From Prasinococcaceae sp. CCMP 1430 (taxonomy: Eukaryota > Plantae > Prasinodermophyta), in contig RQSC01000314.1 of NCBI GenBank assembly GCA_013416795.1, positions 79,251 through 118,303 on the forward strand: a stretch of DNA of 39,053 nt, in the 5' to 3' direction. The position numbers and the translations under genes are program-made. This document shows, one piece after another, positions 4,013 to 37,461 of this stretch. Numbering within the stretch: position 1 is the first letter of the stretch; each line of letters begins with the position of its first letter. The notes beneath the pieces are model-generated. The model had not been told where the DNA came from. It ran no database searches and saw only the letters and a program-made list of their open reading frames with translations.

Positions 4013-4100
4013 CCTGCGGGCGGCGGGGTGCGGCGCGTGGCGGCGCGCGACGCCGAACTCCCCCCCCGCGTCCCCGCCGCCGGGTGCGCGGCCGCCGGCG

Positions 4101-11032: not shown

Positions 11033-14000
11033 TCACATCCACGGATGCCACACGGCGTCCATGCTGACAATGTTCGCCGGGTTGATCGCCGCGGCCACCA
11101 GCTCCGCCACGCCGGCATGCACGGGGGGTACCGACAACTGCCCTCTCTTTGCCCCTCCCGCTGGTGGGCCCGCACCGCTGCTCCTGCTGGGCACGCATTT
11201 GGCCAGACTCCCGGCGACGCTCGACGCGAGCGCGAGCGAGCGCTCGCGCACGAAGCCGGGCTCGAGCGGTGGCGTCGGGTTGGGCGGCCCCTGCCCGGCG
11301 GCCGTGGCGGCGGCCACAGCCTGCTGTACGCGCCCATCCCACGTGACGACCTCGTCGCGGAAGTAGAGCGCGAGGAAGTCGCGCAACTGCGACTTGCGCG
11401 GGTCGCCGAGCACGGCCTGCGCGCTCGCGGCCATTGACGCCACCAGCAGCCCCTCCACGCCGAAGGGCGTTGCGAAGCTCTGGAGGTTTCTCGTGAGCCG
11501 GAAGGGCACAGCCTCGGGCTGCTCGAGGTTGCAGGACCTGTCGAGCTCCACGCGGAAGTCCGCATGCATGAACGAGCCGCCGCGGCGCGAGAAGAGCATG
11601 CGCGCGGGCGTGCGGCCACCCACACGCAGCGCGCTGCCTAGCAGCGACCACAGCGCCAGCTGCGAGGTGAAGTGACGCTTGAAAATCCACAGGTGGGTGC
11701 CGTTGGGGATGGTCTTGTAGACGTACTGGTTCAGGAGGTTCTCCGATATGAGCTTGCTGCTGATGTCCTGGTACGCCTGCTTGCGCGCGGCCATCAGCGC
11801 GGGCGCCGCCGCCGCCGCGTCGCCGCGGGCCGACGACGCGGCCTGGGAGACGACGTCCTTGAAGTAGACCACGGGCTGGTCCGGGTCGCGCCCGTAGCGC
11901 GCGCAGTGCAGGTTGTAGACCTCGCCGAGCGAGACGGTGTCGGCGTCGTCCTCGACCATGCGCACCTGCGGCCACACCGGCACCACCACCGGCAGCCGCA
12001 GCGCGAGCCTTCGCCGCCGGCACTCAGGGTGCTTTAGCAGCAGGCGATTGACCGCACGCAGCAGCTGCAGCGCGCGCTCGTCGCCGCGCTCGCTCGTCTT
12101 GACGCTGGTCTGGACGATGAAGTGAGCCACACGGCCATCAACGCCCACCAGGCCCACGCGGCGGTGCGAGGCGTCGCGGCGCCGCACAATGGGCACGTCC
12201 GCAGCGAAGTGCGACAGCTTGGCGGTCAGCGAGACGTCCACATCGCTCCCCGAGGGGTCGAGGTACTGGCCGGGCATCTCGAGGTCGCGCGCGCGGTAGG
12301 CGGCCAGGACGGGCGACTCGACCTCAAGGCGCAGGCTCGTCGGGATGCGCGCGCGCACGTCCTGGCGCAGCACAGAGCGCCAGCGTTTCAGCCGGCGCTG
12401 CAGTCCTCCGAGCGTCGAGGCGAACTTGTCCGCCGTGGTAAAGTCGGCCTCGAAGCACTCCTTGTACCGCTTGGCAAAGCTGGCGTGGCGCTGGCACGCC
12501 TCGTCCGAGAAGCACGAGCGGCCGAGCACGCCCAGCTCCTTTGCGAAATTCGGCGGGGGCGGGCTGTTCGACGAGGCCTGGTGCTTGAAGCAGCGAAGGA
12601 GGAAAGCGTCGATGATGCCCAGCAGCCGCTCCTCCGGGCGCGGGTTGAACTTCGAGCCCAGCTCGGTGAGCACGGCCTCGAGCTCCAGCGACAGCGCCCC
12701 GTGTTGCTGGCGCAAGCGCTCCATGCACTCCTTGGCGGCGTCGAACGCGCGCGCCTGGGCGACCACGTGCTGCGATGCGGGCTTGCCCTGCTGCGCCATC
12801 TGCGCGCTGCGGGCCATCGGCTGGCGCTCGAGCAGGGACGTGCGCAGCGCGCAGTAGAGGGCCTGCGGGTAGGCGACCGCCAAGCGACCCAGGATGTTCC
12901 TGGCGACGCCCTCCTCGGCGCGCTGTAGGCCTACCAGCAGCTGTGGGATCCAAGGCAACCACACGTGGAGCGGGATGATGTCCAAGTAGCCACTGAGCGC
13001 GTTCGCCGCCAGGTTGCTGCCGCCAGCGCAGGCATCGAGCGCCACCATGCTCATGAGCCTGGTCGCGGCAGCGCGCTGCTTGGATGAACCCGCACGCGCC
13101 GCCTGCGCGTACGCCGCGACGGCGTGCTCGAGCCAGCCGCTCGCGGAGCCCGCGTTCGCCTCGGATGACATCTTGTCGCAGTGAACTGCCCACGAATGCC
13201 AGCCCTTCGGGAGGCGCTTGAAGATGCTCACGGCCGTGGAGAAGGCCTGGCGTGCGCCCTCGTTGTCCCCCTGCGCCTGCAGCATCTCGCCGCGAAGCCG
13301 GAAAATCTCGGCCTTGTGCTGCCCGGGGAAGTACTCGAGGTTCGTCGTATTGAGAAGGTTCATGCCCTGCTTGAGCTCCGCCGGTGGTCCCAAGTGCGCC
13401 TTCGCCTGCTCACAGATCTTGACGAAGGCCTCCTGCACCTCCATCGTGGCGAAACCGTACATCTTGTTCAGGACTGACACGCACACGCGCGACATGCCGT
13501 GCTTGCGCGCGATGTGCGCCAACCGGTTGACGCTCCACGCCTTGTCGCGGAAGCCCAGCTGGTGCAGCGGCGGATTCACCGCGTGGAAGTCCTTGAAGGC
13601 GTTAATCACCACATTGTGCATGTGGCTGCGCCAGTGCACCATCTCGGACCAGCGCTCGACGCTATCCCACTCGTTCGGGAGGCGCAGGCGCCACGTCTCC
13701 AAGATGTCCTTGAGCTCCGTGCATGCGTGCTGCTGCGAGCGTGACGCGTGGCCTATCTCGACCAGCACGCGCGCACTCTCCTGCAGCTCAACCAGCTGCT
13801 GGAAGCGGAAGAGCAGGTCGGCGTGCGCCTGCACACCGACCGGCGGCAGCGCCCACCAGCGGTGCAGCGCCAGCAGCACGCCCTGCCGGACTGCCGTGTC
13901 CCCCGCCTCGACCGATCCAGCTTGAAGAGCGGCTCGCGCGGTGACACACTTGAGCGCCGGCGTCTCCTCGCACTGCGCCTTTGGGAAGACTGACTCGCGC

Positions 14001-17000
14001 AGCTGCTGCCAGTCGCCAAGCTTCCACAGCGACTCGAGCTGCATCTCGGAATGGTCGATCACGCGAGCAAACTCGGCCACCTGGTCCCACTGGTTCAGCT
14101 GGCGGGCACACTGCACCCAGCTGTCCTCCCAAAGGCAGATCTCGGCCTTCTTCATGGCCTCCTGGAAGTTGCCGTCGTATACCTGCGTCAGGCAGTTGCT
14201 GAAGACGTCCTGTGCGCGAGCGTACATGCCGTGTTGCATGAGTGCCAGCCCAGACGCCGTCTCCTTGGCATTGCAGCGCTTGCGCCAGAGGCCTGCGATC
14301 ATGTCGTGCTCGCCCAGGAGGCGATACAGATCCGCGAGCGCGTCGAAGCAGCGCGTGTCCTGCGGGAAGAGGTTGACGTGGCTCTCCAGCATCGGGATGG
14401 CCACGTGCCAAGTGTTGTACGTTCGGCCTATGAAGCGGATCAGCTCGCTCGGCACCTTGGGCTGGGGGAGCGAGAGCGAGATGCTTTCCAGAAGCGCCTG
14501 CATCACGTTCGGCCGCTGCTGCGCCTGCCTGAGATGGCATTCCTTGGAGAGGAGCGCGATCATCGGCTTCACGACTTGCACTTGGTTCTGCTTGTCGAGC
14601 GCTGCCCAGGTTATCGGGAAGAAGATGACCCACAGCGAGCACGACAGCTGCGCGTCCGAGTGGGCGATTTCCTCGAGAGGCTCGATCAAGTCCTCAACGC
14701 ACAGCGAGCTGAGTGATGACAGCCACGCCGAATGCTGCTCGAAGAGTTCCTCCAGGGGGCTGGCCGCTGACTCGGCCGGCGCGCCGCCACTCTGGTCGTC
14801 CCCCTTACCCTCTTCGGCGCCTTCATGATCCGGTCCGCTGCTCTTCGGTGCCGCATCCACGTCCATGCCTTCCGGTTTGCCACCCTGGGTGTCCTCTTTC
14901 GCCGCGGCCGAGCCCGCGCCCGCCGGAGGCTGCCGCTCTTGCGCCTGCGGTGCCTCCGCGCCCGCCGCCGCCACTCCGATGGCAGGCATGGCGGCGGAGT
15001 TCGGAGCCAGCGTGATCGGCTCCTTTTTCTTGAGGATGGCCAGGAGCAGGCGAACGGCCTGTGTGAGCCAGAAGGTCGAGCTCACGGCCTCCCATTCCTG
15101 CTGGCCAACGATCGCAAGCAGCCGAGCGTACAGCTGAGTGTCAATGGCAGCGTGATACCTCTCGAAGAACTTTCGGCGAACTTCCGGGTCGTTGGCGCGT
15201 AGACCGATCATGAAAGCGCGCTCCACCTTGTCGAAGGCGTCGCGCCTGAGATCGGCTGGCACGGTCCCGACGCCGTCGTCAGCCTTCACGCCTTGCTTGG
15301 CGCCTGCTTTGACGTCAGCCTTGGCATCACCCTTGGCGTCGGCCTCGGTACCGGCTTTCGCGCTGGTCGGCGGACCGTTCGAGCCCGCGTCTACCTGCAC
15401 CGCGGCACTGCTGGGATCCGGAGCACAGGCGAGGTCCTCAAGCAGCCGAAGGAACTCGTCCTTCCAGGCCCGCAGCCGGCTCTGGTCCTTGCCCCTCTGT
15501 GCCTCACGCCGAGCGACGTTCTCGGTGTCGGCGCGGTCGATGGACGCGAGGCGCTGCAGGAAGAGGACAACCTCGTTCGTTTGGAGCGCTCCGGGCGACC
15601 CAATTTTCCCGCCGGTGCGTAGCCATTGGCGCAAGACGGCGAGCACAGCCATCAACGCGTTTGGATCGGTGTCACCTGTCTGGATGAGCAGCACGAGCGC
15701 TTGCAGGAATCCCTTCTTCAGCGCCGGATAGCGTGGCATCTGTTCGCACAGCAGCAGAAGCAGCCGGCGCACGTTGTCCAACGCCGCTATGGAAGGCGGG
15801 GCGTTCAGCTGCGCTGCTGCTGTGTGCGCGTCGAACTTGAGACGCCAGAGGCGCTCCTTGCCGTAGCGGTGCAGCAGCTTGAGCGCCGCTGCCATCAGTC
15901 TTCCTACACGCTGCGAGAGCGGCGTGAGAGGCGCGGCGATGGACATGCTCATGGCCGGGTTTCCCACTGCCCCACCACCGCCACCCAACGCGACGCCGTC
16001 GACCCTCTTGTTGACGTCGGGCAGGAGGCCGCGCTTGGATACCTCCTCCATCAGCGCAATCAGAATCTGCGAGGCACAGATCGCCTGCTTCGTGCCCGCG
16101 CAATGCTCCGTGGGCGGCGGTGGCAGAGGGTTGCCCTGTGCCTGCGCTTGCGCCTGCCGCGCGCTCGCCTCCGAACCGCTCAAGAGATGCTGGACGGTGA
16201 ACTCCTCGAGCTTCTGTTGCAACGTGTCGAGGCCTGTCTGCGGCGGCACGCAGCTAACCGACGCGCATACGCTGGCAAGCGGGCCGTGCAGCACGGGGTC
16301 GCAGACCTGGAAGCACCGCTGCAGCACGTTGCCGATCTGCTGCAGATTAGTGTGCGTCCCCGAGCTGCTCTGCGCCAGGAGAAACGCGGAGCCCTGGGTC
16401 TCGAGCGCGGCGTTGTAAACATGCAAGACGGCCAAGAGAACCGACGTGGGTACATTCTGGTGCTGGAAGTGCTTGTCGAGGTAGTTCAGCCGAATCGAAG
16501 TGGCCGGCCACATCTTGACGACGCGCTGGAAGATTGCAAGGGCGTGGGGATACAGTGCAGTGACCTCGCGGTCCTTTCCCTTCGCCTCGGCCGCTGCGAA
16601 CATCATGCGCGTAAGGAAGGACATCACGAGCTCCTCCATGGCCGCGTTGAGGGACCAGTCGCTAAGCTTTCGCTGCTTCTGCTTCTGCTGCTGCGGCTGC
16701 TGCTGCGCCTGCTTGCCATCGGCTGCGGCCGCTCCACCAGCAGCATCGACTTCCATCGCCGCGCCCCCTTCCGCCCCGTCACCGGCAGATGCAGCAGCTG
16801 TTCCTGCGGCTTCCGCACCGGCCTGCCCGCCGGAGGCAGCGGCATCCTTCGTCTTCTTCGCATCCGGTTCGGCGTCGGCAGCCGCAGGGCCGTCCTCACG
16901 CTGGCGCTTGGAGCCCGTGGCCGAGTCGCCAGCGCCGCCCTCGGCGCTGCCGACGGACGCGGCAAGCCTCTTGCGCTTGACCTCCCAGTCGATCACGAGA

Positions 17001-20000
17001 GTAACCAGGTCCAAGGCAAGGCGCCTGTTTTCGGGCGGCGCATTGGTTGGCAGGCCGAGGCGGCTGAGAGTATTGATGATCTGGGGCACAAACTGCGCAC
17101 GCGACTCGTAGAACAAGTCCGGGTGGCGGACGACCAGCTGCCAAATGTGGATCAGATGCGGCATGCTATGGCTCTCCTCAACGAGAATTTTCTTGGTGTA
17201 GCGGATCCATATAGGGAAGCGGTGTTCGCCGCTGGAAAGCCGCCGCGGCAGCGCAGGGGCGAGCACATCGAGCGCCTTGCGCACCAGCGCGCGTCCCTCA
17301 GGCTGGCACGCCCGCAGAAGAGCCACAAAGACCTGCAGGATGATCTTCTCTGGCGCCTGGTACACCTCTAAGAAGTGACAGACATTGACGAATGCCCACT
17401 GCTTTGAGCTGCAGCCATCGCGCTTGAGGTGGTTCCAGCCAAACTTGATGAGCTCCTTCCGGTGCGGAGTAAGCTCGTTTGGCATCTTGCGGATCAGCTC
17501 AGTGGCAAGCTGGAGGAGCTCGACGCGCAGCGACTCGCTGTAGTGCGCAGACACGTCCTCGGCGGGGTCCAGCAGCGTCGATACGATGCCGCTCACGATC
17601 TCCGCGTCCACGACCTCGCTTGCCCTGTTCTCGCTTCCCTCGCCCGTGATGGCCTCAATGATGGGCAGCACGATGTGCTGCAGACCGAGCACGAGCTCGG
17701 ACTGCGGCAGCGCCCTTTCCTTGAAGATGGCAAGGAACTCGGTGAGCACTGCGCGCTGCTCCGCGGCCGAGTACTTCTTGGCCACGTCCTCCGAAAAGAG
17801 CTCGCGAACGAATGTGTAGTCGACGCGGGAGGACACCGTCAGCGCCGACAGCAACTTGAAGAGGAGCCTGTTCCGCGTGCGGTCCTCACGCACACAGGCG
17901 ACCAAGCAGTGCAGCAGACGCTCCGATTCGTGCACCTGGTGCTCGGGTAGGCGCTCCTCGTCTTTGATCCGCTCGCGCCTGGACGGATCTGCCCACGCGG
18001 CACAGACAGCATCGAACAGGCGCGGGTTTTCCAGCAGCCAGCGCGGGCTGAGCCTCACCAGCTCGGCGATGAGGCCTATGCCCTCGAATCGTGCCGGGTG
18101 GGCCGATGTCAGCGCGGTCAAGGCACCAGCACCACCCATCGATCCCGGCGCAGGGGCGTCGGTGTCCATGGGCTGCGCTGTGCCCTGTTCCTTGTTGCCC
18201 GCATCCGCTGCGGCGCCTTGCGCCGTCGCCCCTGCGCCAGCGTTGGCAACGGTGGGTTGCCCCCCGGCCTCAGTGGTCGTGACGACCGTAATGATATCAC
18301 CTGTCGGACCGGTGTTGGTGGTGGTCGCGACAACTGTCGAACCCGCCACGCTGCCACTTGGTTCCTGCCTTTGGCCGAACGTCACCGCCAAAACCTTGTC
18401 AGCGCTTTTGAGCAGCTCCTCAAGCAGCTCTTTGCCCTCCGGCTTTGCGATGACGCTGACGAGCCTGCGGTACTGCTGAGGATCGCTGAGCTTGTCGAGA
18501 AAGTAGTCGACGCTTTGAGAGGAGTACTTGCACAGGTACTTGGAAAGCGGTGCCTCAAGGATGGAACACACCTCCGACGGCAGGTCGACTGCTGGGAGCG
18601 CACGCTCGAGCCCGTCCACGAGCGGAACGAGCCGAGGCAGGAACTCCTGAGCCACGTCGGGCAGCAGGTGAAAGAGCTCGATGATCGCAGCGGCCACCTT
18701 AGCATCCTCGCCCGGCTTCCACGCAGTCTGATCGGCCGCGAGGCGCTCGGGGTACATCCAGCGCTCGAGATGCTCGAGCAGCTTCTCGCCGAGGGACTTG
18801 TTGAACCAGGCGCTCAGAAGGGACAAGAGGTCGGCCAGGCCATTCAGGAGCGGAAGGTTGAGCGTGCGGTAGGTCGCCAAATTGAGCAGGATAGGTCGCA
18901 GCGAGCTCTGCAGCAGCTCCTTGGGCAGGTTCTTGCGGTCGAGCGCTGTCTGAATGCCCTTCTTCGCCGGAGCAGCCACGTCATCCCGCCCACGGATTAG
19001 GCAGAGGAAGAAGACAGATACAGCCTTCGAGCGGAGCTCAACAGGCGCGGGGGCAGGGGGTGGCTGGGCACCTGGGTTGGCAGGCACAGGCGCAGGCATG
19101 AGCGCCTGGGGGATGGTCATTGTAAGGCTGTCAAGCGCCAGCGAAGCCGCCAGCATGCGCACCGCCGCAAGCGAAACCGCCTCGAGTGCCGGCGTAGCGC
19201 GCGTGTTCTTGCCCCCAGTCGCTAGCATCTCCTGATCCGCAGTGATGAGCGCCTCGCACAGTATTGGAACCACCTTCTCATCGATCGCCACCAGGGGCGG
19301 CGTCTGCTCCATGCAGAAAGTGAGAGTGTCGGCGAGGCCAGCCTGTTCAGCGAGGGGGCGCGAGGAGAACGGGCGCGCGAGCACTTGCTTCAGCTGGTCC
19401 TCCAGGTAAGGTTCCATCAGCTCCTTCACGCTGACGTCCCTCACCCTCGCGGCGTGCTGCAACCCTTCAATGCACGCGTCGCGGCACGCAGGCACGGTCG
19501 CTGGCGTCAGAAGCTTCACCGCCATCGCCTTGCACAGCTCCGCGAGGTATTTTTGTGCCTCCTCAGACAATGCGGCGGGCGCATCGGATCCGCCCGCCTC
19601 GCCCTCAGTTTGCGCGTCGTCCGAGCCATCCTTCTCCTTGTCCTCGTCCGAGCCATCCTTCTTCTTGTCCTTTTCCTTTCCGTCGCCTGCCTTGGCCTCG
19701 GGCTGCTTGTCACCGCTGGCTTCGACCGCGGCGGGCTCCGTCGCCGCAGGCACAATCCGCGCAGGAAAGGCCGCGGCCATAAGGCCCTGCAAGTTCTTGC
19801 GCGCAGCTTTGATGAGCTCCATCGGCGCCGGCATCTTGCAGAAAGACAGCACATGGAGGTACGCATGGATTGCAGGCACTGCAAGCTCCAAAGACAGCAG
19901 GTCGAGGTCACGCAGGCACAAAATCGCCATCCCAAGCAGGCGCGTGCTCGCGACGCGCCTCGCCCAGCCCTCCTCGTAGCACGCGTGCGACAGCCGGGCA

Positions 20001-23000
20001 ACGACGGCGGCAATGGCCTCCTTGATGTTGCCCTTCGCTTTTGCGCCTCCGCAGGCGACCTCCGGATCGTCCGAGGAGCTTCGCTCACAGGCTCCTTTCC
20101 AAAGCAGCACGAGAGCGCCGGTGAAGCGCTCGAACGCGTCTGCAGCAGCATCGACGTACCCCGTCACAGGTGTGGCCGCAGCCTCGAGGATTGCTTCGAG
20201 GACGATGAGGGGATCAAGCTCGCGCAGAGATGTCTGGGCGGCCGGCAGAGCGGGCAACGAAGACATTCCATCTGCAGAAGCACCCGCTCCAGCTGCGGCA
20301 CCAGCAGCGGCGGTCGCAGCAGAGCCGCCCGCAGCGGCAGCTGCATTGGTCGCGTCGGCAGCATTGGCGGTCTCCGCAGCGGTGGCGTACGCGGCCTCCA
20401 CCTCCAACTCCTGTGTTGCACACGTCTTCACATACCCCCCAGCAGAGAGCATGGCGAGGTGCGTGCTGATGGCGTTGTTGAAGGGCTTGGCACTGTCCTC
20501 CATGCCCGGCAAAGCCGCCGCCGAGATGCACGTGGTCAAGATCTGACACACAACCTGACTCTCAGCGAGTAGCTGCATGCGTGTGCGTGCCCCCCCGGCA
20601 GCGGCCGCATGTGCAGCCTGCCCGGCAGCAGCAGCCTGCGCGCCCGCGCCCTCCGCATCCTTGCAGCCAAGAAGGGCATCGGCCAAGTCCTTAGCGGCCG
20701 TGGCCTTGCCACGCATGCCGAGCGCTGCCGATGCACATGCGTGCAGCACGCGCAGCGAAGCCTTTCGTGCCGCAGGCTCCGTGTTGATGATGCACGCACG
20801 CCGAACGAAGGCGATGACCTTGTCCAGCGGCACCAAAAACGGGGTCGAAGGCGCAAACGTGAGCAGCACACGGAAGCCGTGCTCCGGGTACTCTTTGCAC
20901 TGCACCCCTGCGCTTTCGTCGATCATGCGGCTTGAACGCCCACCCAGCTTGCCGAGCAGCTGCAGGGCCTTGGCTCCGAACTGGAACGGCGGCGGGCGCA
21001 CCAAGCTCCACAGCGCGCCGACCACCCGTGGCGCAAGCGCGCCGAGTTCGTCCTCAAGGAAGTCGGGGCTGAGCTTGTCGATCCAAGACTCGCACACGCG
21101 CAGGCCAAGCTGGGTGAGCTCCGCGGGTGGAGACCACGCGATGCTTTCGTCCTTTTCGATGGCCAAGAGTACGGGGCGAACCAGCATGCTGAGGTGCGGC
21201 ATCAGGCTTGCGAGGCGGGCGGGCATGTTCAAGCACGTCTCGACGACATACGCGCGGTGTGCGAGGCCAGCCGGCGAGTCCAGAAGGCTCACCACAGCCT
21301 GCAGCGTCCCGGGCAGGAGGGGCACAAACTCGGCGTAGAGCACCTCCGATCGAGTCTGCGCTAGCGCTCGGAAGAGCTTGCGAGTGGCGTCCAGAAACGC
21401 GCCCAGGGGCTCACCGTTCTCGATCGCCTTCCTCAGCCGCATCACCAGCGGGCCCACGTGCGGGCGTGACAGCCTGTCGGCGTCGTTCGGCATGCTCGCA
21501 ACTAGCGAGCACAGCAGCGAGATGAGCTTCAGGCTGAGGCGCGCCGCAGCGCTCTCCGGGTCCGCGAGGATCTCCAGTCTCTTCGGCGACGCTAAGTAGC
21601 CCCCGAGCACGTCGGCGAAGGGCCGCCCGGTCTGTGGGTGCGCCACCAGGGCCGCGGGTACGGTGCCGAGCGCATGGTTCTCAATCATGCCCTGGAAAAG
21701 CACGTCAAAGTGCATCGAGAAGATGTCACGGAAGTTATGCGGCTCAAGCACGGTGAACATAGCCGCAAAGTGCTCGAAGATTTCCTTGTCCGTAGGCGGA
21801 AAGAGCGATAGACACGGGACGCCATGCTTGAGCATCCCTGTGGCGATGCGGACCTCGTCATTGGACATGCCGCGCGCCGGGGGCGGGGCCATGGTGTTCG
21901 CACCACCCTGCGCACCCCCGGAGCCACCGGCACCCACTGCCCCTGCGACGCCCGCAGCGCCTGTGCTCACGTCAACACCTTGTTGCTGGCGCTGCTGCTC
22001 GGTGAGGCGATTGAATTTGGTCACGCTCCACATCAACGTTTTCATGCCCATGATCAATGTCCGCAGCAGTGCCCGACAGTCCTGGATGTCCTTCGCGTGC
22101 GTGGTCACACTCTGCTGCAAGTAGAGGACCTCACGCTCTTTCTCATCGGCCTCACTTGCTTTGCCGGCATCCAAACTGGCCTCGCCAGCCCCATCGGTGA
22201 CCTTCGGCGCCCCCTCGGCGGCTGCGCTGGCCTTGGCGGACTGCTCCTTCTGCAAACGCTCCTGCTCCTTGATGAGCTCTTTGGTCACCGGCTGAAGCGC
22301 CTCGAGCTTCGACACGAAAGTCTCGAGAATGCGTCCGAGCAGCGCCCTTCCCTCGGCGCGGCTGAGTTCATCGCCGCGGCGGGTGAAGATGGACTCGACC
22401 AAGTTGAGCATCAGGCGCACGCAGGTCGTCTGCACGCTGGTAGGCAGCGTGGGGTCGTGCACGTTGCAGCTGAAGAGATGCACGATGCGCCGCAGCTGAT
22501 GCATTGAGAGCTCCAGGCGCACATGGTGCACGAGCTCCGCGAGGAGCGAGTAGCCCAGGGGGCGCAGCGTCTCCAAGCACGCGCGCCCCGAGCCCACGAG
22601 CACCTTCTCATCTAGCAGCGTTCCGATGCGCGCGTGAAAGCCCTGGCGGAACTCGGTCGCCAGCACATGGCGTGTAGCAACCAGCAGCTCCTTGCGGGTG
22701 GCCACGTTGTCTGGGCAAGTCACCAGCAAGTCCACGATGCCCTGGCTGACGCGATCCTTGTGAGGGCGCAAAGTGTCCGCACACGAGCGCAGCAAGTAGG
22801 TGAGGAAACTGACCGTCTTCACCTGGGCGGCCTTGAAGTCGGAGTACAGGTCGCGCAGCGTGGCGGGAATGGGCTGCGTCGGGCCCTTCAGAGCGATCAC
22901 GTTCACCATCAGCGGGAGGAGCACGTTGACATTCTGTCCGATGTGCTTAGGGTACAGCTGGAAGAGAAACATGACAATGAGCGGGCACTCGATGACGACC

Positions 23001-24031
23001 TTGAAAGAGCGCTTCGACGGCGTGTCGGCGGACGACACGCTCGACGAGCCCGAGCCACTGATACCCCCGTCGATTCCTCCCTCGCCCGGACCCCCCTCGG
23101 CGGAGGGCAGGGTCCCGCCGGTAGCCGCAGTGCCGGCGCCGCCAGTAGCTGCAGCAGCGTCGGCCCCGCCGGCCTGGGCACCTGCCTCAGCGCCCTCGGC
23201 CTTGGCCTTGTCAGCCTGTTGGCCCGATCCCGAGCCGTCGTTGCCTGCGCTCGCGCCTTCCGCCGCACCGGCGGCCGCCGAGGCCCCTCCGCTCGTGCCC
23301 GCGGCGCCCTTGGCTGCGGCCGCAGCCTGCGCCGCGGCTTCGAGGTCCGTCCTCTCCTTCTCCACCGCCTTGGCCAGATCGGCTGCCGCGTTCGGGGCCT
23401 GTTCGTACAGCGAGCACACGAACTTCAGGAAGGGCGCGACGTGATCTTCAAGCGTTGGGCGGAAGTTCTTGTGAAGATCAAAGATGATGCGAAGGCAGAT
23501 GAGCGCGCACGCCTCCTTGTCCACCTCAAGCACGTGCAGGCACAGCGCCATGAGCTGCTGCACGTACGGGCGCAGAAACTCGTTGTGCGGCAAGCGATTG
23601 AGCACCTCCAGCAGGACCTTGCGCAGCTTGGACTCCTGCCTGGCGCGCTTCATCGCCGCCGCCGCGGTCGCCGCGCGCTCCTTCTGCGCCTCCTTGTCTG
23701 CACTATCGTCCTCTTTGTCTTTCGCCTCGTCCTCCGCACCGTCCGCGGGCGCCGCAGCCGGCGCCGCGGCGGGCGCGGTGCCTGGCGGCAGCTCCAGTGG
23801 CGGCTGGATGGCCGCCGGGGCGGACGCGTCGCCTGCGGCAGTCACCGGCCTGCTCAGCAGCTTCTGGAAGACGGGGAAGTAGTGCTGCAGGAAGCCCTGG
23901 TACTCTGCGGTGTGCACGATCTCGATGGAGTCACGCACCTGGTTGGCCAGCTCGAGCTGGCGCTCGATGCTCACGCCATCGGCGGTGAACTCGCCCGCGT
24001 GCTCCGCGAACTTCTTCGCGTCGAGCATCAT
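11033..24031 (-). CDS. TRRAP: TRRAP/Tra1, PIKK-family pseudokinase scaffold of SAGA/NuA4; single exon, about 4332 aa
   Basis: Start MMLDAKKFAEH...LELANQVRDSIEIVHTAEY. Motifs include FKVVIECPLIVMFLFQLY, RKELLVATRH, ELIKFGWNHLK and IWIRYTKKIL, plus the FAT domain (WRLRLPNEWD, YFPGQHKAEIFRLRG), a degenerate kinase domain and FATC ...MDAVWHPWM*. Confidence 0.98.
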   Translation of the reverse strand: MMLDAKKFAEHAGEFTADGVSIERQLELANQVRDSIEIVHTAEYQGFLQHYFPVFQKLLSRPVTAAGDASAPAAIQPPLELPPGTAPAAAPAAAPADGAEDEAKDKEDDSADKEAQKERAATAAAAMKRARQESKLRKVLLEVLNRLPHNEFLRPYVQQLMALCLHVLEVDKEACALICLRIIFDLHKNFRPTLEDHVAPFLKFVCSLYEQAPNAAADLAKAVEKERTDLEAAAQAAAAAKGAAGTSGGASAAAGAAEGASAGNDGSGSGQQADKAKAEGAEAGAQAGGADAAAATGGAGTAATGGTLPSAEGGPGEGGIDGGISGSGSSSVSSADTPSKRSFKVVIECPLIVMFLFQLYPKHIGQNVNVLLPLMVNVIALKGPTQPIPATLRDLYSDFKAAQVKTVSFLTYLLRSCADTLRPHKDRVSQGIVDLLVTCPDNVATRKELLVATRHVLATEFRQGFHARIGTLLDEKVLVGSGRACLETLRPLGYSLLAELVHHVRLELSMHQLRRIVHLFSCNVHDPTLPTSVQTTCVRLMLNLVESIFTRRGDELSRAEGRALLGRILETFVSKLEALQPVTKELIKEQERLQKEQSAKASAAAEGAPKVTDGAGEASLDAGKASEADEKEREVLYLQQSVTTHAKDIQDCRALLRTLIMGMKTLMWSVTKFNRLTEQQRQQQGVDVSTGAAGVAGAVGAGGSGGAQGGANTMAPPPARGMSNDEVRIATGMLKHGVPCLSLFPPTDKEIFEHFAAMFTVLEPHNFRDIFSMHFDVLFQGMIENHALGTVPAALVAHPQTGRPFADVLGGYLASPKRLEILADPESAAARLSLKLISLLCSLVASMPNDADRLSRPHVGPLVMRLRKAIENGEPLGAFLDATRKLFRALAQTRSEVLYAEFVPLLPGTLQAVVSLLDSPAGLAHRAYVVETCLNMPARLASLMPHLSMLVRPVLLAIEKDESIAWSPPAELTQLGLRVCESWIDKLSPDFLEDELGALAPRVVGALWSLVRPPPFQFGAKALQLLGKLGGRSSRMIDESAGVQCKEYPEHGFRVLLTFAPSTPFLVPLDKVIAFVRRACIINTEPAARKASLRVLHACASAALGMRGKATAAKDLADALLGCKDAEGAGAQAAAAGQAAHAAAAGGARTRMQLLAESQVVCQILTTCISAAALPGMEDSAKPFNNAISTHLAMLSAGGYVKTCATQELEVEAAYATAAETANAADATNAAAAAGGSAATAAAGAAAGAGASADGMSSLPALPAAQTSLRELDPLIVLEAILEAAATPVTGYVDAAADAFERFTGALVLLWKGACERSSSDDPEVACGGAKAKGNIKEAIAAVVARLSHACYEEGWARRVASTRLLGMAILCLRDLDLLSLELAVPAIHAYLHVLSFCKMPAPMELIKAARKNLQGLMAAAFPARIVPAATEPAAVEASGDKQPEAKAGDGKEKDKKKDGSDEDKEKDGSDDAQTEGEAGGSDAPAALSEEAQKYLAELCKAMAVKLLTPATVPACRDACIEGLQHAARVRDVSVKELMEPYLEDQLKQVLARPFSSRPLAEQAGLADTLTFCMEQTPPLVAIDEKVVPILCEALITADQEMLATGGKNTRATPALEAVSLAAVRMLAASLALDSLTMTIPQALMPAPVPANPGAQPPPAPAPVELRSKAVSVFFLCLIRGRDDVAAPAKKGIQTALDRKNLPKELLQSSLRPILLNLATYRTLNLPLLNGLADLLSLLSAWFNKSLGEKLLEHLERWMYPERLAADQTAWKPGEDAKVAAAIIELFHLLPDVAQEFLPRLVPLVDGLERALPAVDLPSEVCSILEAPLSKYLCKYSSQSVDYFLDKLSDPQQYRRLVSVIAKPEGKELLEELLKSADKVLAVTFGQRQEPSGSVAGSTVVATTTNTGPTGDIITVVTTTEAGGQPTVANAGAGATAQGAAADAGNKEQGTAQPMDTDAPAPGSMGGAGALTALTSAHPARFEGIGLIAELVRLSPRWLLENPRLFDAVCAAWADPSRRERIKDEERLPEHQVHESERLLHCLVACVREDRTRNRLLFKLLSALTVSSRVDYTFVRELFSEDVAKKYSAAEQRAVLTEFLAIFKERALPQSELVLGLQHIVLPIIEAITGEGSENRASEVVDAEIVSGIVSTLLDPAEDVSAHYSESLRVELLQLATELIRKMPNELTPHRKELIKFGWNHLKRDGCSSKQWAFVNVCHFLEVYQAPEKIILQVFVALLRACQPEGRALVRKALDVLAPALPRRLSSGEHRFPIWIRYTKKILVEESHSMPHLIHIWQLVVRHPDLFYESRAQFVPQIINTLSRLGLPTNAPPENRRLALDLVTLVIDWEVKRKRLAASVGSAEGGAGDSATGSKRQREDGPAAADAEPDAKKTKDAAASGGQAGAEAAGTAAASAGDGAEGGAAMEVDAAGGAAAADGKQAQQQPQQQKQKQRKLSDWSLNAAMEELVMSFLTRMMFAAAEAKGKDREVTALYPHALAIFQRVVKMWPATSIRLNYLDKHFQHQNVPTSVLLAVLHVYNAALETQGSAFLLAQSSSGTHTNLQQIGNVLQRCFQVCDPVLHGPLASVCASVSCVPPQTGLDTLQQKLEEFTVQHLLSGSEASARQAQAQAQGNPLPPPPTEHCAGTKQAICASQILIALMEEVSKRGLLPDVNKRVDGVALGGGGGAVGNPAMSMSIAAPLTPLSQRVGRLMAAALKLLHRYGKERLWRLKFDAHTAAAQLNAPPSIAALDNVRRLLLLLCEQMPRYPALKKGFLQALVLLIQTGDTDPNALMAVLAVLRQWLRTGGKIGSPGALQTNEVVLFLQRLASIDRADTENVARREAQRGKDQSRLRAWKDEFLRLLEDLACAPDPSSAAVQVDAGSNGPPTSAKAGTEADAKGDAKADVKAGAKQGVKADDGVGTVPADLRRDAFDKVERAFMIGLRANDPEVRRKFFERYHAAIDTQLYARLLAIVGQQEWEAVSSTFWLTQAVRLLLAILKKKEPITLAPNSAAMPAIGVAAAGAEAPQAQERQPPAGAGSAAAKEDTQGGKPEGMDVDAAPKSSGPDHEGAEEGKGDDQSGGAPAESAASPLEELFEQHSAWLSSLSSLCVEDLIEPLEEIAHSDAQLSCSLWVIFFPITWAALDKQNQVQVVKPMIALLSKECHLRQAQQRPNVMQALLESISLSLPQPKVPSELIRFIGRTYNTWHVAIPMLESHVNLFPQDTRCFDALADLYRLLGEHDMIAGLWRKRCNAKETASGLALMQHGMYARAQDVFSNCLTQVYDGNFQEAMKKAEICLWEDSWVQCARQLNQWDQVAEFARVIDHSEMQLESLWKLGDWQQLRESVFPKAQCEETPALKCVTARAALQAGSVEAGDTAVRQGVLLALHRWWALPPVGVQAHADLLFRFQQLVELQESARVLVEIGHASRSQQHACTELKDILETWRLRLPNEWDSVERWSEMVHWRSHMHNVVINAFKDFHAVNPPLHQLGFRDKAWSVNRLAHIARKHGMSRVCVSVLNKMYGFATMEVQEAFVKICEQAKAHLGPPAELKQGMNLLNTTNLEYFPGQHKAEIFRLRGEMLQAQGDNEGARQAFSTAVSIFKRLPKGWHSWAVHCDKMSSEANAGSASGWLEHAVAAYAQAARAGSSKQRAAATRLMSMVALDACAGGSNLAANALSGYLDIIPLHVWLPWIPQLLVGLQRAEEGVARNILGRLAVAYPQALYCALRTSLLERQPMARSAQMAQQGKPASQHVVAQARAFDAAKECMERLRQQHGALSLELEAVLTELGSKFNPRPEERLLGIIDAFLLRCFKHQASSNSPPPPNFAKELGVLGRSCFSDEACQRHASFAKRYKECFEADFTTADKFASTLGGLQRRLKRWRSVLRQDVRARIPTSLRLEVESPVLAAYRARDLEMPGQYLDPSGSDVDVSLTAKLSHFAADVPIVRRRDASHRRVGLVGVDGRVAHFIVQTSVKTSERGDERALQLLRAVNRLLLKHPECRRRRLALRLPVVVPVWPQVRMVEDDADTVSLGEVYNLHCARYGRDPDQPVVYFKDVVSQAASSARGDAAAAAPALMAARKQAYQDISSKLISENLLNQYVYKTIPNGTHLWIFKRHFTSQLALWSLLGSALRVGGRTPARMLFSRRGGSFMHADFRVELDRSCNLEQPEAVPFRLTRNLQSFATPFGVEGLLVASMAASAQAVLGDPRKSQLRDFLALYFRDEVVTWDGRVQQAVAAATAAGQGPPNPTPPLEPGFVRERSLALASSVAGSLAKCVPSRSSGAGPPAGGAKRGQLSVPPVHAGVAELVAAAINPANIVSMDAVWHPWM

Positions 24032-24199
24032 CGCGCTTCGGTTGGCGGCGCTGCGCCGCGCGACGCCCGCTGCCGCCGCGGCCGCACGGCGGGCGAGCCC
24101 GCAGCTCAGGGGCGAGGGGGGCTGCCGGGGGGAGGCAGGCAGGCGGGCCCGCGGGGGCGCGCGCGCGCACGCCTCCGCCGCCTCGCCTCCTTCCCGCGG

Positions 24200-24600
24200 A
24201 CAAAACACAAACAAAAAAAAAGCGCAGTGCGTACTAAACACCGCGGAATTGGAATCGATCCATCAAAATGCGTCTCGTTTCGCCCGCTTTTCGGAGCGCT
24301 CGAGCCGCCTTTCCGAGATATTTTTTTTGAACGCCCCCGGGCGCCCCCGCGGGCGCCGCGTCGCGCCATACTTTCGCAGGGGCGTTTTTTTTTCTTTTTT
24401 TTTTGGCGGCGCGGCCGCGCGCTTTTCGCCGAAAACGCGCCGGCCTCGCGCGCCATTAATTCAAACCCTGACCCAAAGCTATACCCTAATGTACGCACGG
24501 TTTCGTAACCGTAACCTCCGCCGTCGACGGAGGCGCCGCGCGCGTTTCCCAAGAGTTTCCCGTGGGTGCATTTGTTTTTGTTTTGCCTGATTATGTAAAG
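24200..24600. promoter_or_regulatory. AT-rich island with poly(dA:dT) tracts; putative bidirectional promoter of TRRAP and NAA60
   Basis: A- and T-tracts at about 24213, 24320 and 24386, ACCCTAA at about 24482, and CGTAACC twice (24504, 24510), all lying between divergent ATGs at 24031 and 24730. Confidence 0.65.
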
Positions 24601-32340: not shown

Positions 32341-32509
32341 AACAGGAGCAATGCGGATCCACCCCGAAGATCCGGAGCTTTCTTCTAGAAAGGATGGCGA
32401 CAGCTCAGCTCTCGCCGCATCAACCGGCGCTTGTCACTCCCCTGGCCCCCCGCACGTGCCAAAAGTGCGTGTGGGGAACGAGCGACGAAAGGGAGCAGTC
32501 GGCGCTCCG

Positions 32510-34351
32510 TCAGTCGTCGTCCGAGTCGGGCTCGTACGCCGCTCGCAGCTCGGCCGCCTCGGCGGCGGCGGCCGACGCTCCCCCGCGCCCGGCGGCTGGG
32601 GGCGCCTCTTCCTCGCCGGCGGTGTCGAACGCGCCGGATTTCTGCCGCGTCGCCTCGTCTGCCTCGCTGAGTCCGTTGTCGGCTCCGCCGAAGGCGCGCG
32701 CCATGGCCCTGCGCTGCCTGCGTCGCCTCTCTTCCAGGCGCCACTTGGCCTTGTCCAGCTCGCGCGTGATGCCGGCGTCATTTGGGCACAGCGAGAGCGC
32801 CTTGGCAAAGTGTTTGCACGCCTCCTCGAACTCGTTGAGGTGCGCGTGAGCCTGGCCCATGCGGAAGCACGCCTTCGGATTGAAGCGCTCGGCCGCTTGA
32901 GGGTCGTGCTGGTGCTCGGGCCTGCGATTCTCCTCATCGTGCGCCGCCAGGCAGTCTTCGATCGCACCGCGCGGGTCGCCTAGCCGCAGGCGCGCCGCCG
33001 CGCAGTTGAGCAGCAGCGGGATCCGCGCCTGGCGCCGCATCTCGCGCTCGGAGCGCTCGGTGGCATGGTCGTCGACATCTCGATTCCACGCCTTGTCCAG
33101 GTAGCGCAGGGCCTTCACATACTTGGCAACCGCTCCAGCGAATTCGCCGGCCTTGAACATCTCGTTTCCGAAGGCGCGCACCTGCGCAGCAGCGGACAAG
33201 CGGCTCTCGTACCGGTCTGAGCCCATGGCGGTGGCGTCGGCCGGCCACGGCGGAAAGGGGTCGCCGTCGCCGCCCGTGGCAAGGCCATCGTCGCCGTCGT
33301 ACTCGACCTCGCCGCATGCGACCACCTCGATGCGCTCGACCGGACGCCCGACGTCGGCGCCGCTCGAGCGCGTGTCCACGCGCTCGAGCTCTCGCAGCGT
33401 GCCGTAGCCGCGCAGCAGCCGCCCGAAGACGCACTGGCGCGCGTCCAGCTGAGGGCACGACTTGAGCGTCACGCCAAAGGCGGAACCGCACATGCCCGCC
33501 TCGTCCACCATCATCGTGAGCAATCCGCTGGTGTCATGCGGCAGCGTAAAGTTCTCGGGCTCGAAGGGGCCGCCGTAGATTGAGTCCACAGCCGCAGGCG
33601 TGGGCGCCCCCGCATTGCTGCCGCGGTGCTCGAGCGCGTTTGGCACGGCGAGGTGGCCGATCTCAACGACAGCGGTGCGAACGTGGGGCTCGTCTTCCCC
33701 GAGCTCGCGCCGACGCTGAGTGCGCTTATTTTCGAGCACCGCAGGGTCCGGCAGCTCGTTGTGATTGATGACGGGCTCGAGCGTGTCGCCAGGTCCCATT
33801 CGTGGATCCCGAGGCGGCAGCGGTGCCAGGTGGGCATCGCGGCCTTCGACCGCGCGTTCCCAGTCGCGCTTCCGCGACGGCCGCACGCGCCACACCTCGG
33901 AGCGCTCGTAGGAAAGCGGCAGGCCGCTGGCCAGACCTTTGCCGCGCTCGCCGGTGCATAGGCAGCGAACATTTTCGGCTGTCTTGGGCGCGAGGTCCGC
34001 GAAGAGCTCGAACACCAGCCGCGTGCGCAGCGCGTCGGCGACCGCGCCGCCGCCAACACGCAGCTCGAGCCACACGCGCGGGTTGCCCGCACGCGCGCGC
34101 GGCACATCGCCGCTTTGGCTCAGCGCGTCAAGCAGGCCGAACGCTTCCGCGCGGCGCGATCCCGCTCGACATGCAACCGCCAAGGCCCGCCGGCGCGCGC
34201 TCCACCAGCGCGCGGACGAGGCGCCCCACCCCCCCACGCACACACACCGCGCGCCGCACCGGGGTCGCCGCTGTGCCACCTCGGCCGCCTCCGCCGCCCC
34301 GCGCGCGCGCTGTTCTCCCTGCCGGGGGAACGCGCGCCGGGTGGAGCGCAT
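32510..34351 (-). CDS. CYP40/PPID-like cyclophilin-TPR protein with a degenerate PPIase domain; possible in-frame intron 34259-34113
   Basis: NPRVWLEL..GG....RLVFELFADLAPKTAENVRCLCTGERG, SIYGGPFEPENF and VFGRLLRG, followed by three TPRs (GNEMFKAGEF..A..KY.KALRYL; LLLNCAAARL; KACFRMGQA). Confidence 0.88.
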   Translation of the reverse strand: MRSTRRAFPRQGEQRARGAAEAAEVAQRRPRCGARCVCVGGWGASSARWWSARRRALAVACRAGSRRAEAFGLLDALSQSGDVPRARAGNPRVWLELRVGGGAVADALRTRLVFELFADLAPKTAENVRCLCTGERGKGLASGLPLSYERSEVWRVRPSRKRDWERAVEGRDAHLAPLPPRDPRMGPGDTLEPVINHNELPDPAVLENKRTQRRRELGEDEPHVRTAVVEIGHLAVPNALEHRGSNAGAPTPAAVDSIYGGPFEPENFTLPHDTSGLLTMMVDEAGMCGSAFGVTLKSCPQLDARQCVFGRLLRGYGTLRELERVDTRSSGADVGRPVERIEVVACGEVEYDGDDGLATGGDGDPFPPWPADATAMGSDRYESRLSAAAQVRAFGNEMFKAGEFAGAVAKYVKALRYLDKAWNRDVDDHATERSEREMRRQARIPLLLNCAAARLRLGDPRGAIEDCLAAHDEENRRPEHQHDPQAAERFNPKACFRMGQAHAHLNEFEEACKHFAKALSLCPNDAGITRELDKAKWRLEERRRRQRRAMARAFGGADNGLSEADEATRQKSGAFDTAGEEEAPPAAGRGGASAAAAEAAELRAAYEPDSDDD

Positions 34352-34675
34352 GCGATTTGATATACGTTTCGCGGTGCGCGCCTGGCTGCAACGTTACACG
34401 CAGCTGATCGAAGTCGTTCGAGTCTGAAGTCACTTGGAACTTGTGGGTACGTGTAAACGACCCACGGGCGAGCTGCGCGTGCGCTGCGCTCGCGCCCCCC
34501 GCGCAGCGATGGAGGTGTGAATGCGCGCGCGCCTACATGGCTGCACCAACACCTCTAGTACACCAGGTATGACACGCGCGTGCATCGGCGTCGTCGCCGC
34601 CCTGAGCATGAATATCATTCTTATGTACAGGATGACTTGGCCGCTGTGCGCACAGCACACGTGTGCGCAAATGTG

Positions 34676-34734
34676 GTCAGGGCCGCGCCCCGCGTGAGCG
34701 ACCATGGCTCGTGCGTTGCGGGCGCGCCCGTCAT
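34676..34734 (-). ncRNA. SECIS element (form 2) in the SelO 3' UTR
   Basis: Minus strand reads ATGAC GGGCGCGCCCGC AA CGCAC GAGC CATGGTC GCTC ACGCG GGGCGCGGCCC TGAC. It has a UGAN/NGAN quartet, a 10-12-bp helix II, an unpaired AA and an apical GAGC/GCTC mini-helix. A candidate helix I is GGCCGCT (34744-34738) / AGCGGCC (34645-34639). Confidence 0.82.
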
Positions 34735-34828
34735 GCTAGCGGCCGGTGTGTGTTCCGTGCATGCCCTTCGTTGGCATGCGTGTGCAATATGTGTGAGAGG
34801 ACGCCTCTAGGGGAGGTCATCCTCTCAT

Positions 34829-36750
34829 CTAGCTCGATCAGGACACGGCAATGGTTGCCGCCCACGCCGGCGGCAGAGCGTCAAGAGACAACGGCCGGCC
34901 GCACGCACCGCCGGCGCACGCCCCGGCCGCAGGAGCCGCGCCATCGCCGCTGGCGTCGGTGGGCTCGTCGAAAGGGCGCTGTAGCTTCTCCAGCAGCCGG
35001 CGTACCGCATCGTACTCACCCTTTTCGGCCTGAGCGATGCACTCCTCCATCACGTACTGCCTGGGCACGAGCCGCGGGTTGGATCGCAGCATGAGCTCGC
35101 GCCGCGCGCGCGCGAAGCTCTCGGCGCCGGCAGAGCAGTTCTCTCCGTCCGCCGCAGCTGCGTTCGCGTCATCCCGCAGCCTCGAACGGTACTTCGTCAG
35201 CCACGAAGTCCACGTCACAGTGTCTGCTGCGCGCTTCTGCTCGTCAGTCACGCGCTTGAGCGCGGCATACTCCTCGTGTTTTCGCAGTTCACCGACCAGA
35301 AAGCCCGGCTTCACGCCGAGGCGCGCCTGCAAGATGCCGGGGTTCTGCTGCTCGACCGCAAGCAGGTAGTGCAACTTGTCCTCGGGAATGCCCGGCTTGG
35401 AGGCCTCGGCAATGGTGGCCGCACTGCAGGTGTTGGCCAGCATGAGCTCAACATCTGCTCTGCTGGGCTCGGTTGATGCGCCCGCCGCTGGCGCGTCAAT
35501 CTGCGCGAGCGCCCGCCAGCTGTTCGTCCAGTCGGCGCCCGTCATGGTCATAGCGTCGAGCAGCGCCTCGACGAGACCGCGATCAGCCGCATCAGCCTGG
35601 GCGTCGCCGCGCGCGCGCAGCAGCCCCATCTTGCGGCGCATGAGGCGCAGATACTCGCCATCGTAAGCCGCTCTGAATGCGAGCCCGGCCGCCTCGACGC
35701 CGCGCTTGCCGCCCAGCTCGCCCATCGCCGGGGCCCACGCCTCCGCAAGCTTGCGCACGTTGAACTCGCACACGACTGGCTGGCTCCGATAGTCGTACCG
35801 CCCGGAGCTGTCCGAGCTGTTGCACACGTAGGTCGGGTCGAAGCGGTCAACGAAGCCGAAAGGGCCGTAGTCGATGGTGACCCCAACGATGCTCATGTTG
35901 TCCGTATTGAGGACGCCGTGGCAAAAGCCCACGCACTGCCATGCCGCGACCAGTCGCCCCGTGCGCCGCGCGACCTCCTCGAGCATCGCGGCGTAGCACG
36001 CCGGAGAGCCCCGCCCGTCGTGCACGCGCCATACGTCCGGAAAAAAGTTCTCAGCCGTGTAGTCAAGCATGCGCGGCAGCAGCTCGCCCTCAAGGCCGAC
36101 CGAGGGGCCCTCCATGCCCGTGATACTGTCGCGCGACTTGAACGTCTCGAACGAGCCGAAGCGCAGAAACGTGGGGGCGACACGCGTGATGACACTCGCG
36201 CGCTCGCTCGTGATGTTTCCGTCGTAGCGTCTGTCGCGCTCCACGCGCGTGTCGGATGTGACCAAGCTCGCCGCGCGCGTCGTCGGCACGCCGAGCGCCG
36301 CCATCGCCTCCGAGCAAAGGAATTCGCGGATGGAGGAGCGCAGCACCTTGCGCCCGTCGCCTCGCCGCGAATACAGCGTCGGGCCCGCGCCCTTGAACTG
36401 CACCTCCCAGCGGTGCAGCCCGCCGTCGCCTGCCGCCGCGCTCGAGCTCACGCCCTCACCGCAGCCCCCCCCGACCGCCGAGAGGGTCTCACCGAGGTAC
36501 ATGGTCGCGCCGTCGCCGAGCTGCCCGCTGAAGTGGCCAAATTGGTGGCCGCAGTAGCAGTGCGCCATGGGCGCCGCGCCGGGTATCGGCGCGCAGCCGC
36601 CGAGCAGCCGCGCCGTGGCGTCGCCGTCGCGCCACATGGCGTCCACGTCGGCGTCCCCGAGGCCGAGCATGCCCAGCGGCTCCCGCGCGAGCGCCACCAC
36701 CCGCGGGGCCTCGAGCGGCGTGGGCGCTGCCTCCGAGAAGCACGCGCCCC
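34829..36750 (-). CDS. SELENOO: Selenoprotein O (YdiU/Fmp40 AMPylase pseudokinase) with UGA-encoded Sec; 5' end lost in the gap
   Basis: Motifs AHCYCGHQFG.FSGQLGDG, QFKGAGPT.YSR.GDGR.VLRSSIREFLCSEAM, GFCHGVLNTDNMSI.G.TIDYGPFGF and NPR.VPRQY. C-terminus V-S-TGA(34840-38)-S-S-TAG(34831-29) matches the family V(T/S)(U/C)SS*. Confidence 0.95.
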
Positions 36751-37461
36751 NNNNNNNNNNNNNNNNNNNNNNNNNNNNNNNNNNNNNNNNNNNNNNNNNN
36801 NNNNNNNNNNNNNNNNNNNNNNNNNNNNNNNNNNNNNNNNNNNNNNNNNNNNNNNNNNNNNNNNNNNNNNNNNNNNNNNNNNNNNNNNNNNNNNNNNNNN
36901 NNNNNNNNNNNNNNNNNNNNNNNNNNNNNNNNNNNNNNNNNNNNNNNNNNNNNNNNNNNNNNNNNNNNNNNNNNNNNNNNNNNNNNNNNNNNNNNNNNNN
37001 NNNNNNNNNNNNNNNNNNNNNNNNNNNNNNNNNNNNNNNNNNNNNNNNNNNNNNNNNNNNNNNNNNNNNNNNNNNNNNNNNNNNNNNNNNNNNNNNNNNN
37101 NNNNNNNNNNNNNNNNNNNNNNNNNNNNNNNNNNNNNNNNNNNNNNNNNNNNNNNNNNNNNNNNNNNNNNNNNNNNNNNNNNNNNNNNNNNNNNNNNNNN
37201 NNNNNNNNNNNNNNNNNNNNNNNNNNNNNNNNNNNNNNNNNNNNNNNNNNNNNNNNNNNNNNNNNNNNNNNNNNNNNNNNNNNNNNNNNNNNNNNNNNNN
37301 NNNNNNNNNNNNNNNNNNNNNNNNNNNNNNNNNNNNNNNNNNNNNNNNNNNNNNNNNNNNNNNNNNNNNNNNNNNNNNNNNNNNNNNNNNNNNNNNNNNN
37401 NNNNNNNNNNNNNNNNNNNNNNNNNNNNNNNNNNNNNNNNNNNNNNNNNNNNNNNNNNNNN
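36751..37461. other. Assembly gap (711 N)
   Basis: Run of N. It hides the 5' ends and the shared promoter of SelO and the desaturase. Confidence 0.99.

Follow-up and report, generated by a model that had tools for sequence, protein, structure and literature searches.

In the alga Prasinococcaceae sp. CCMP 1430 (Prasinodermophyta), the codon at which the open reading frame (ORF) of SelO appears to stop is almost certainly read as selenocysteine (Sec), as in SelO of animals and of other marine picoalgae. SelO is a mitochondrial AMP-transferring enzyme. Its gene lies on the minus strand of the window, by which is meant the whole 39,053-nucleotide stretch of contig RQSC01000314.1 that was analysed (contig positions 79,251 to 118,303); all coordinates below count from the first letter of this stretch. 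We have high confidence that the UGA at 34840-34838 of the SelO gene encodes Sec.

The SelO gene and its in-frame UGA

34841 to 36750, minus strand: SelO coding sequence as far as it is visible (636 codons), assigned by Pfam PF02696
34838 to 34840, minus strand: in-frame UGA, very probably read as Sec, third residue from the C-terminus
34829 to 34837, minus strand: Ser-Ser codons TCG AGC (34837-34832) and the true terminator UAG (34831-34829)
35822 to 35824, minus strand: codon for the Cys of the activation loop, within PTYVCNSSD (35836-35810), assigned by alignment with Cys272 of YdiU (GFICNHSD)
36751 to 37461: assembly gap of 711 N inside the SelO gene

The minus-strand translation of 34870-34829 reads PAWAATIAVS*SS* (asterisks are stop codons), and the end of the SelO frame is thus UGA-Ser-Ser-UAG. 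This bears out a preliminary description of the sequence, in which an in-frame TGA-TCG-AGC-TAG had been pointed out after TIAVS. The same description had set V(T/S)USS, the end of the Sec forms, beside the bacterial VSCSS, and the window does match the shared ending [U/C]-S-S, with E. coli YdiU closing in ...EVSCSS and P. syringae SelO in ...EISCSS. The whole C-terminal motif PPxW....V[ST][U/C]SS is common to the window SelO and the bacterial structures ending VSCSS/ISCSS, and an ending U/C-S-S-stop was found in all 24 distinct metagenomic and window loci as well as in the bacterial structures. Among the top 120 homologues, 116 have a protein model that is cut exactly at the codon of the Sec position. 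It had also been proposed that the list of ORFs wrongly ends the window protein at its UGA, and the comparative evidence supports the longer ending U-S-S.

The ORF upstream of the UGA matches the SelO family profile Pfam PF02696 over residues 41-573, the kinase-like domain, with an expectation value (E) of 2.3e-90. Against the Protein Data Bank it matches P. syringae SelO (E 2e-74) and E. coli YdiU (E 8e-69), all SelO/YdiU matches spanning 2e-74 to 2e-67. The active-site motifs (the Lys of KGAG, HGVLNTDN and the Asp of IDYG) are intact and are identical or conservatively changed relative to 6EAC and 6III; 6K20 was also aligned. By these matches, the product of the window gene has a pseudokinase fold and is a protein AMP-transferase of the SelO type. 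SelO moves AMP onto Ser, Thr or Tyr residues of its substrates, glutaredoxin among them, and protects against oxidative stress (PMC12409994). The activation-loop Cys named in the preliminary description is present in PTYVCNSSD and aligned with Cys272 of YdiU. Apart from its UGA, the visible SelO ORF is intact across 636 codons, and this part of the coding region is intron-free, the longest RNA contig (X1, described below) being colinear with and identical to the genome.

The residue three positions ahead of the Sec position had been described as Ala in place of the mammalian Cys (AxxU versus CxxU), and A-x-x-U is indeed present. In the 116 top homologues whose models stop at the Sec codon, this residue is Cys in 90, Arg in 11, Ser in 6 and Ala in 3, so that 26 of 116 have no Cys there. 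Judged from these sequences, A-x-x-U is a minority form and is not unique among SelO homologues.

The gap at 36751-37461 hides the SelO start codon together with the conserved N-terminal motif and what is presumed to be a targeting peptide, with a loss of about 50-60 codons. Relatives have further sequence ahead of the G(A/V)CFS motif, at which the window ORF starts, namely a presequence and a conserved N-terminal segment. Several frames contain long ORFs that bridge the gap, and these are artefacts.

A probable form 2 SECIS in the 3' untranslated region

34676 to 34734, minus strand: core of a form 2 selenocysteine insertion sequence (SECIS), from predicted fold, conservation in relatives and covariance models
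34639 to 34744, minus strand: whole SECIS with helix 1 (34744-34738 paired with 34645-34639), energy-predicted fold
34794 to 34827, minus strand: 13-base-pair hairpin with one bulged A, starting 13 nucleotides after the UGA and 2 nucleotides after the UAG, predicted fold
34759 to 34779, minus strand: second small hairpin of 7 base pairs between the stop codon and the SECIS, predicted fold

The preliminary description had placed a form 2 SECIS behind the UGA; such a fold was found in the 3' untranslated region (3'UTR), and it is conserved and covaries in relatives. Its AUGA was located correctly, but the distance of about 104 nucleotides is to be replaced, as AUGA 34734-34731 starts 106 nucleotides after the U of the UGA, with 103 nucleotides between them. 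The element is on the correct strand, 3' of the UGA and 325 nucleotides before the ATG of the next gene (34351). Four AUGA sites are found within the 489 nucleotides between the UGA and this ATG, and a SECIS-like fold was found at 34734-34731 only. The AUGA sites at 34828 and 34820 lie inside the first hairpin and have no 3' GA partner, and the site at 34618 has no helix; all three were rejected as SECIS cores. The sole result of the Rfam search, a match to PYLIS_2 at E 1.1, was put down to chance.

In the core, AUGAC 34734-34730 stands opposite UGAC 34679-34676 (the 3' UGA being 34679-34677), an arrangement that fits a tandem G.A/A.G quartet and is invariant in six aligned relatives. Helix 2 folds with 10 base pairs between 34729-34720 and 34690-34680, with G 34684 bulged. 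Beyond helix 2 follows an unpaired GCAA with AA at 34717-34716, 13 nucleotides after the AUGA, and then an apical helix, first 3 and further up 4 base pairs long, with a 7-nucleotide loop (helix and loop together 34715-34691). The apical AA had been contrasted with the CC of the mammalian SelO SECIS. Since the CC motif in SelO SECIS elements is specific to mammals (PMC3316567), the AA, which stands at this place in all non-mammalian elements, is the normal state.

A span reaching from 34639 had also been given for the element, and this matches the predicted helix 1. On its 3' side the predicted helix 1 encloses an extra 9-base-pair hairpin (34669-34647), which would give the element a three-way shape; the SECIS elements of the metagenomic loci L057, L061 and L014 have a plain helix 1 of 7-8 base pairs and no insert.

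Comparison with the closest relative

The best protein relative of the window SelO, P0001, is 60% identical to it and is encoded on the Tara Oceans scaffold L001. The L001 gene ends in LAVS-TGA-TCC-AGC-TAA, with one Ser codon and the terminator differing synonymously from those of the window, and its AUGA is found 104 nucleotides after its UGA. In an alignment of the two 3'UTRs the SECIS is the sole conserved block. One pair of helix 2 has been remodelled in L001: a G of the 5' strand is replaced by a C that now pairs with the formerly bulged G, and the old partner C has become an A that forms the new bulge. The L001 gene call (3001-4863) halts at the Sec UGA, as the window ORF does. It also starts too late, the frame being open for 46 codons further upstream through a presequence-like stretch rich in Ala, Arg and Ser.

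Related loci and covariance models

A scan of Joint Genome Institute (JGI) metagenomes with two proteins, the window SelO and P0001, yielded 80 SelO loci. Fifteen distinct loci including the window end in V[TS]-TGA-S-S followed by TAA or TAG, and nine distinct loci end in V[TS]-TG[CT]-S-S. UGA is the true terminator in none of the 15 Sec-type loci and in five of the nine Cys-type loci (Fisher's exact test, about 0.003 by hand arithmetic). Sec-type SelO genes thus avoid UGA as their real stop codon, which is a simple discriminator for annotating the SelO family. Pattern searches detected form 2 hairpins 75-337 nucleotides after the UGA in L002, L004, L006, L011-13 and L026/27.

Covariance models were limited to the GC-rich group of loci, because the alignment of AT-rich with GC-rich SECIS elements by MAFFT was unsuccessful. 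A first model (R1), built from the window and L001, gave plus-strand matches in four further lineages, namely L057/58/59 (E 8e-5), L061, L014 and L017. These matches lie 92-218 nucleotides after UGA-SS-UAG endings, and the corresponding proteins are about 42% identical to the window SelO. In the resulting six-sequence SECIS alignment, 95.8% of the pair cells hold standard pairs, compared with 40-63% in controls with slid partners, and two helix 2 pairs show compensatory changes (CG/UA/GC and GC/CG/AU). A second model (R2), built from five elements without the window, found the minus-strand site 34739-34671 with 51.4 bits (E 9e-11; next best 12.2 bits). A third model (R3), built from four elements without the window or L001, found the same site with 42.1 bits (E 2e-9; next best 11.6 bits), and this SECIS site was its single significant match in the 39-kilobase window. 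The E-values of R2 and R3 come from a shortened calibration.

RNA evidence

Logan contigs of four RNA runs were placed on 32400-36750. The X1 contig of 1975 nucleotides is identical to and colinear with 34729-36703; it passes the UGA as well as the UAG and extends 100 nucleotides into the 3'UTR. X1 is probably a culture transcriptome, with a total of 11 megabases and intergenic DNA that is free of contigs. A contig from X3, a metatranscriptome, covers 34793-35199 and carries single-nucleotide polymorphisms (SNPs) elsewhere and none at the UGA. Neither the X1 nor the X3 contig differs from the genome at 34838-34840.

Because the RNA contigs stop at 34729, the inclusion of the SECIS in the SelO mRNA can only be inferred. 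No poly(A) tail is present on the X1 contig, and the X1 and X3 contig ends both fall at the feet of strong GC hairpins. They are taken to be drop-outs of coverage rather than transcript ends, and the contigs cannot settle the matter. Downstream of the SECIS, at about 34630-34606, lies a UGUAC patch rich in A and T, which would be the likeliest poly(A) signal.

Weighing of alternative explanations

Several observations weigh against the reading of UGA 34840-34838 as Sec. Gene-finder models of nearly all homologues stop at the Sec-position codon; Rfam gave no SECIS match, either in the 3'UTR at E<=10 or in the whole window at the gathering score; and the energy of the SECIS fold is not better than that of shuffled sequences (z +1.0, in DNA of 68% GC). 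All three would be in keeping with a UGA that is a genuine stop, with a SelO that ends ...IAVS without a redox residue and with a hairpin that is a chance GC-rich structure. The Rfam SECIS seeds are presumably mostly from animals, and z-scores of the SECIS fold are uninformative because the DNA is GC-rich. With fold energy and Rfam uninformative or negative, the case beyond chance therefore rests on the comparative evidence, and this speaks against a genuine stop. UGA-Ser-Ser-stop is the exact C-terminus of the family and is kept by L001 with synonymous changes, the hairpin is the one 3'UTR block that the window and L001 have in common and it carries compensatory changes, R3 picks the SECIS site from distant relatives, and UGA is never the terminator in Sec-type loci. 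A reservation is that the alignments from which R2 and R3 were built had been fitted with R1, which is itself derived from the window. Further points on the unfavourable side are that the hairpin inserted in helix 1 is unusual for a SECIS (by energy prediction only) and that the insertion of Sec is deduced from sequence comparison. Taken with all of these, a genuine stop is considered extremely unlikely.

The RNA contigs also tell against Sec, as none from the four runs covers 34676-34728 and the longest ends at 34729, inside the SECIS core. Together with the X3 contig end at 34793, this could mean that the SECIS, though real by ancestry, is not part of the mature mRNA of this strain, polyadenylation taking place near 34729 and the protein being mostly truncated at the UGA. 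Logan contigs, however, cannot show transcript ends, and the alignment takes in the whole of the X1 contig, with no loose end at 34729, so that this contig carries no poly(A) tail. No UGUAA-like signal is found upstream of 34729, the first AT-rich patch of the UGUA type being that at about 34630-34606; the feet of GC-rich hairpins, where the contigs end, are places at which coverage typically drops; and the element is strongly conserved in sequence. A SECIS outside the mRNA is thus regarded as very unlikely. That TGA stands in place of TGC or TGT through a pseudogene lesion, or through an error of sequencing or assembly, has a practically negligible probability. The assembly does have an N gap within the same SelO gene, but independent contigs of four runs, including two marine metatranscriptomes with other SNPs, show no difference at 34838-34840, TGA occupies the Sec position in L001 and in 14 other lineages, and the remainder of the 636-codon ORF is undamaged.

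Proposed decoding and redox function

If the UGA is a Sec codon, the form 2 SECIS in the 3'UTR (core 34734-34676) would recruit SBP2, eEFSec and Sec-tRNA during translation. The ribosome would then insert Sec at UGA 34840-34838, add Ser-Ser and stop at UAG 34831-34829. These steps are drawn from established eukaryotic Sec decoding. No tRNA gene was found in the 39-kilobase window. E. coli YdiU is regulated by a disulfide between Cys272 and Cys476, the C-terminal Cys, whose position is occupied by Sec in animals (PMC7278666). By analogy, the C-terminal Sec of the algal enzyme and its activation-loop Cys (codon 35824-35822) may form a reversible selenenylsulfide, which would couple AMPylation activity to the redox state. 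Such a Sec-Cys switch would make SelO a redox-gated AMPylase.

Hairpins between the UGA and the SECIS

The 106 nucleotides from the UGA to the SECIS (34840-34735) fold far better than shuffled sequences (z -5.75), and the 60 nucleotides after the window UGA have a z-score of -3.9. Over the same length, the 3'UTRs of six GC-rich green-type Sec-SelO genes have z-scores that are all negative (-1.0 to -3.9), and nine Cys-type loci average about -0.2. The sequence of the hairpin behind the UAG is not conserved in L001, which has a different and weaker hairpin at the same offset. Likewise, L001 has a hairpin of different sequence at the relative place of that at 34759-34779. From its predicted fold, the 34827-34794 hairpin may be an accessory element. 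That it acts on the ribosome as a lineage-specific recoding or termination-delay element, similar to a Sec redefinition element and aiding the decoding of a UGA two codons before the true stop and about 100 nucleotides from its SECIS, is considered unlikely.

Neighbouring genes

The next gene downstream of SelO (32510-34351, minus strand) encodes a cyclophilin-TPR protein of the Cyp40-like type with a long N-terminal extension rich in Ala and Arg. The cyclophilin profile is matched by residues 257-347 only, and the 5' part of this ORF may therefore be noncoding or the gene may have introns. No RNA contig could be assigned to this gene, possibly because conserved genes were filtered out, and an exact look-up of its protein, like one of the SelO fragment on the X1 contig, gave no match. 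Within the ORF, 47 nucleotides (34107-34153) match contigs with a depth of more than 400 in all four runs, which continue as unrelated sequence; the match probably reflects a short motif that a highly expressed transcript also contains, rather than expression of the locus. At 11036-24241 on the minus strand lies an uninterrupted ORF of 4402 codons of the Tra1/TRRAP type (Tra1 ring, central HEAT, FAT and PI3K-like regions), which appears to be intron-free over 13 kilobases.

Relation to known Sec-containing SelO proteins

A 2007 paper described Sec-containing SelO in Ostreococcus tauri and O. lucimarinus, where the SECIS is of type II, and in Porphyra, where it is of type I (PMC2375036). The Ostreococcus protein resembles that of the window in coming from a marine picoalga of the green lineage, in having Sec in a U-x-x end and in having a type II SECIS in the 3'UTR of its gene. 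Ostreococcus belongs to the Chlorophyta, whereas the window alga belongs to the Prasinodermophyta, and the two are likened here by description. Dudkiewicz et al. (2012) described a 'marine picoeukaryote' branch in which the Uxx end is usual and in which gene models had likewise been truncated at the UGA (PMC3281104), and SELENOO is among the listed algal selenoprotein families (PMC7539508). The accessible part of the text of the Prasinoderma coloniale genome paper reports many selenoproteins and names none (PMC7455551), and the accessible part of its supplementary tables has no selenoprotein list; Prasinoderma is absent from Liang 2019 and Jiang 2020.

The best named matches of the window SelO are those of Chlamydomonas and metazoans, with 40-46% identity. 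The public SelO models of Chlamydomonas reinhardtii (P0003) and C. schloesseri (P0042) end ...WAAELCVT, exactly at the Sec position, and are probably annotation-truncated Sec proteins as well. Human and other vertebrate SELENOO are about 44-46% identical to the window SelO across its visible part and share the end PPxWA..xV[TS]-U-S-S and decoding by a 3'UTR SECIS. They differ in having mostly C-x-x-U where the window has A-x-x-U, although A-x-x-U is also found in hagfish and a few others, and in mammals the apical CC of the SECIS stands in place of AA. With E. coli YdiU and P. syringae SelO (6K20, 6III and 6EAC) the window protein shares the fold family, the catalytic motifs and the activation-loop Cys. 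The bacterial tail is PPDWGKxLE[VI]S-C-S-S and has Cys, not Sec, whereas that of the window is PAWAATIAVS-U-SS; the window protein is about 150 residues longer through insertions and a presumed N-terminal targeting peptide.

Significance

Sec-containing SelO in green picoalgae has been published since 2007, and the window gene adds another case and an annotation fix, not new biology. The corrected gene model, in which SelO ends U-S-S, gives this conserved stress enzyme of mitochondria its redox-active residue back. It also adds one entry to the selenoproteome of the Prasinodermophyta, the third green-plant phylum, of which this alga is to our knowledge the only sequenced member. A review assigns Cys to the SelO of 'lower eukaryotes' (PMC7278666), which is too sweeping a statement. 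The comparative set of 15 Sec-type and nine Cys-type loci, with its model of the algal SelO SECIS, could help the annotation of SelO in GC-rich algae. The results support the view that Sec-containing SelO is ancestral in the green lineage and that Sec was later replaced by Cys.

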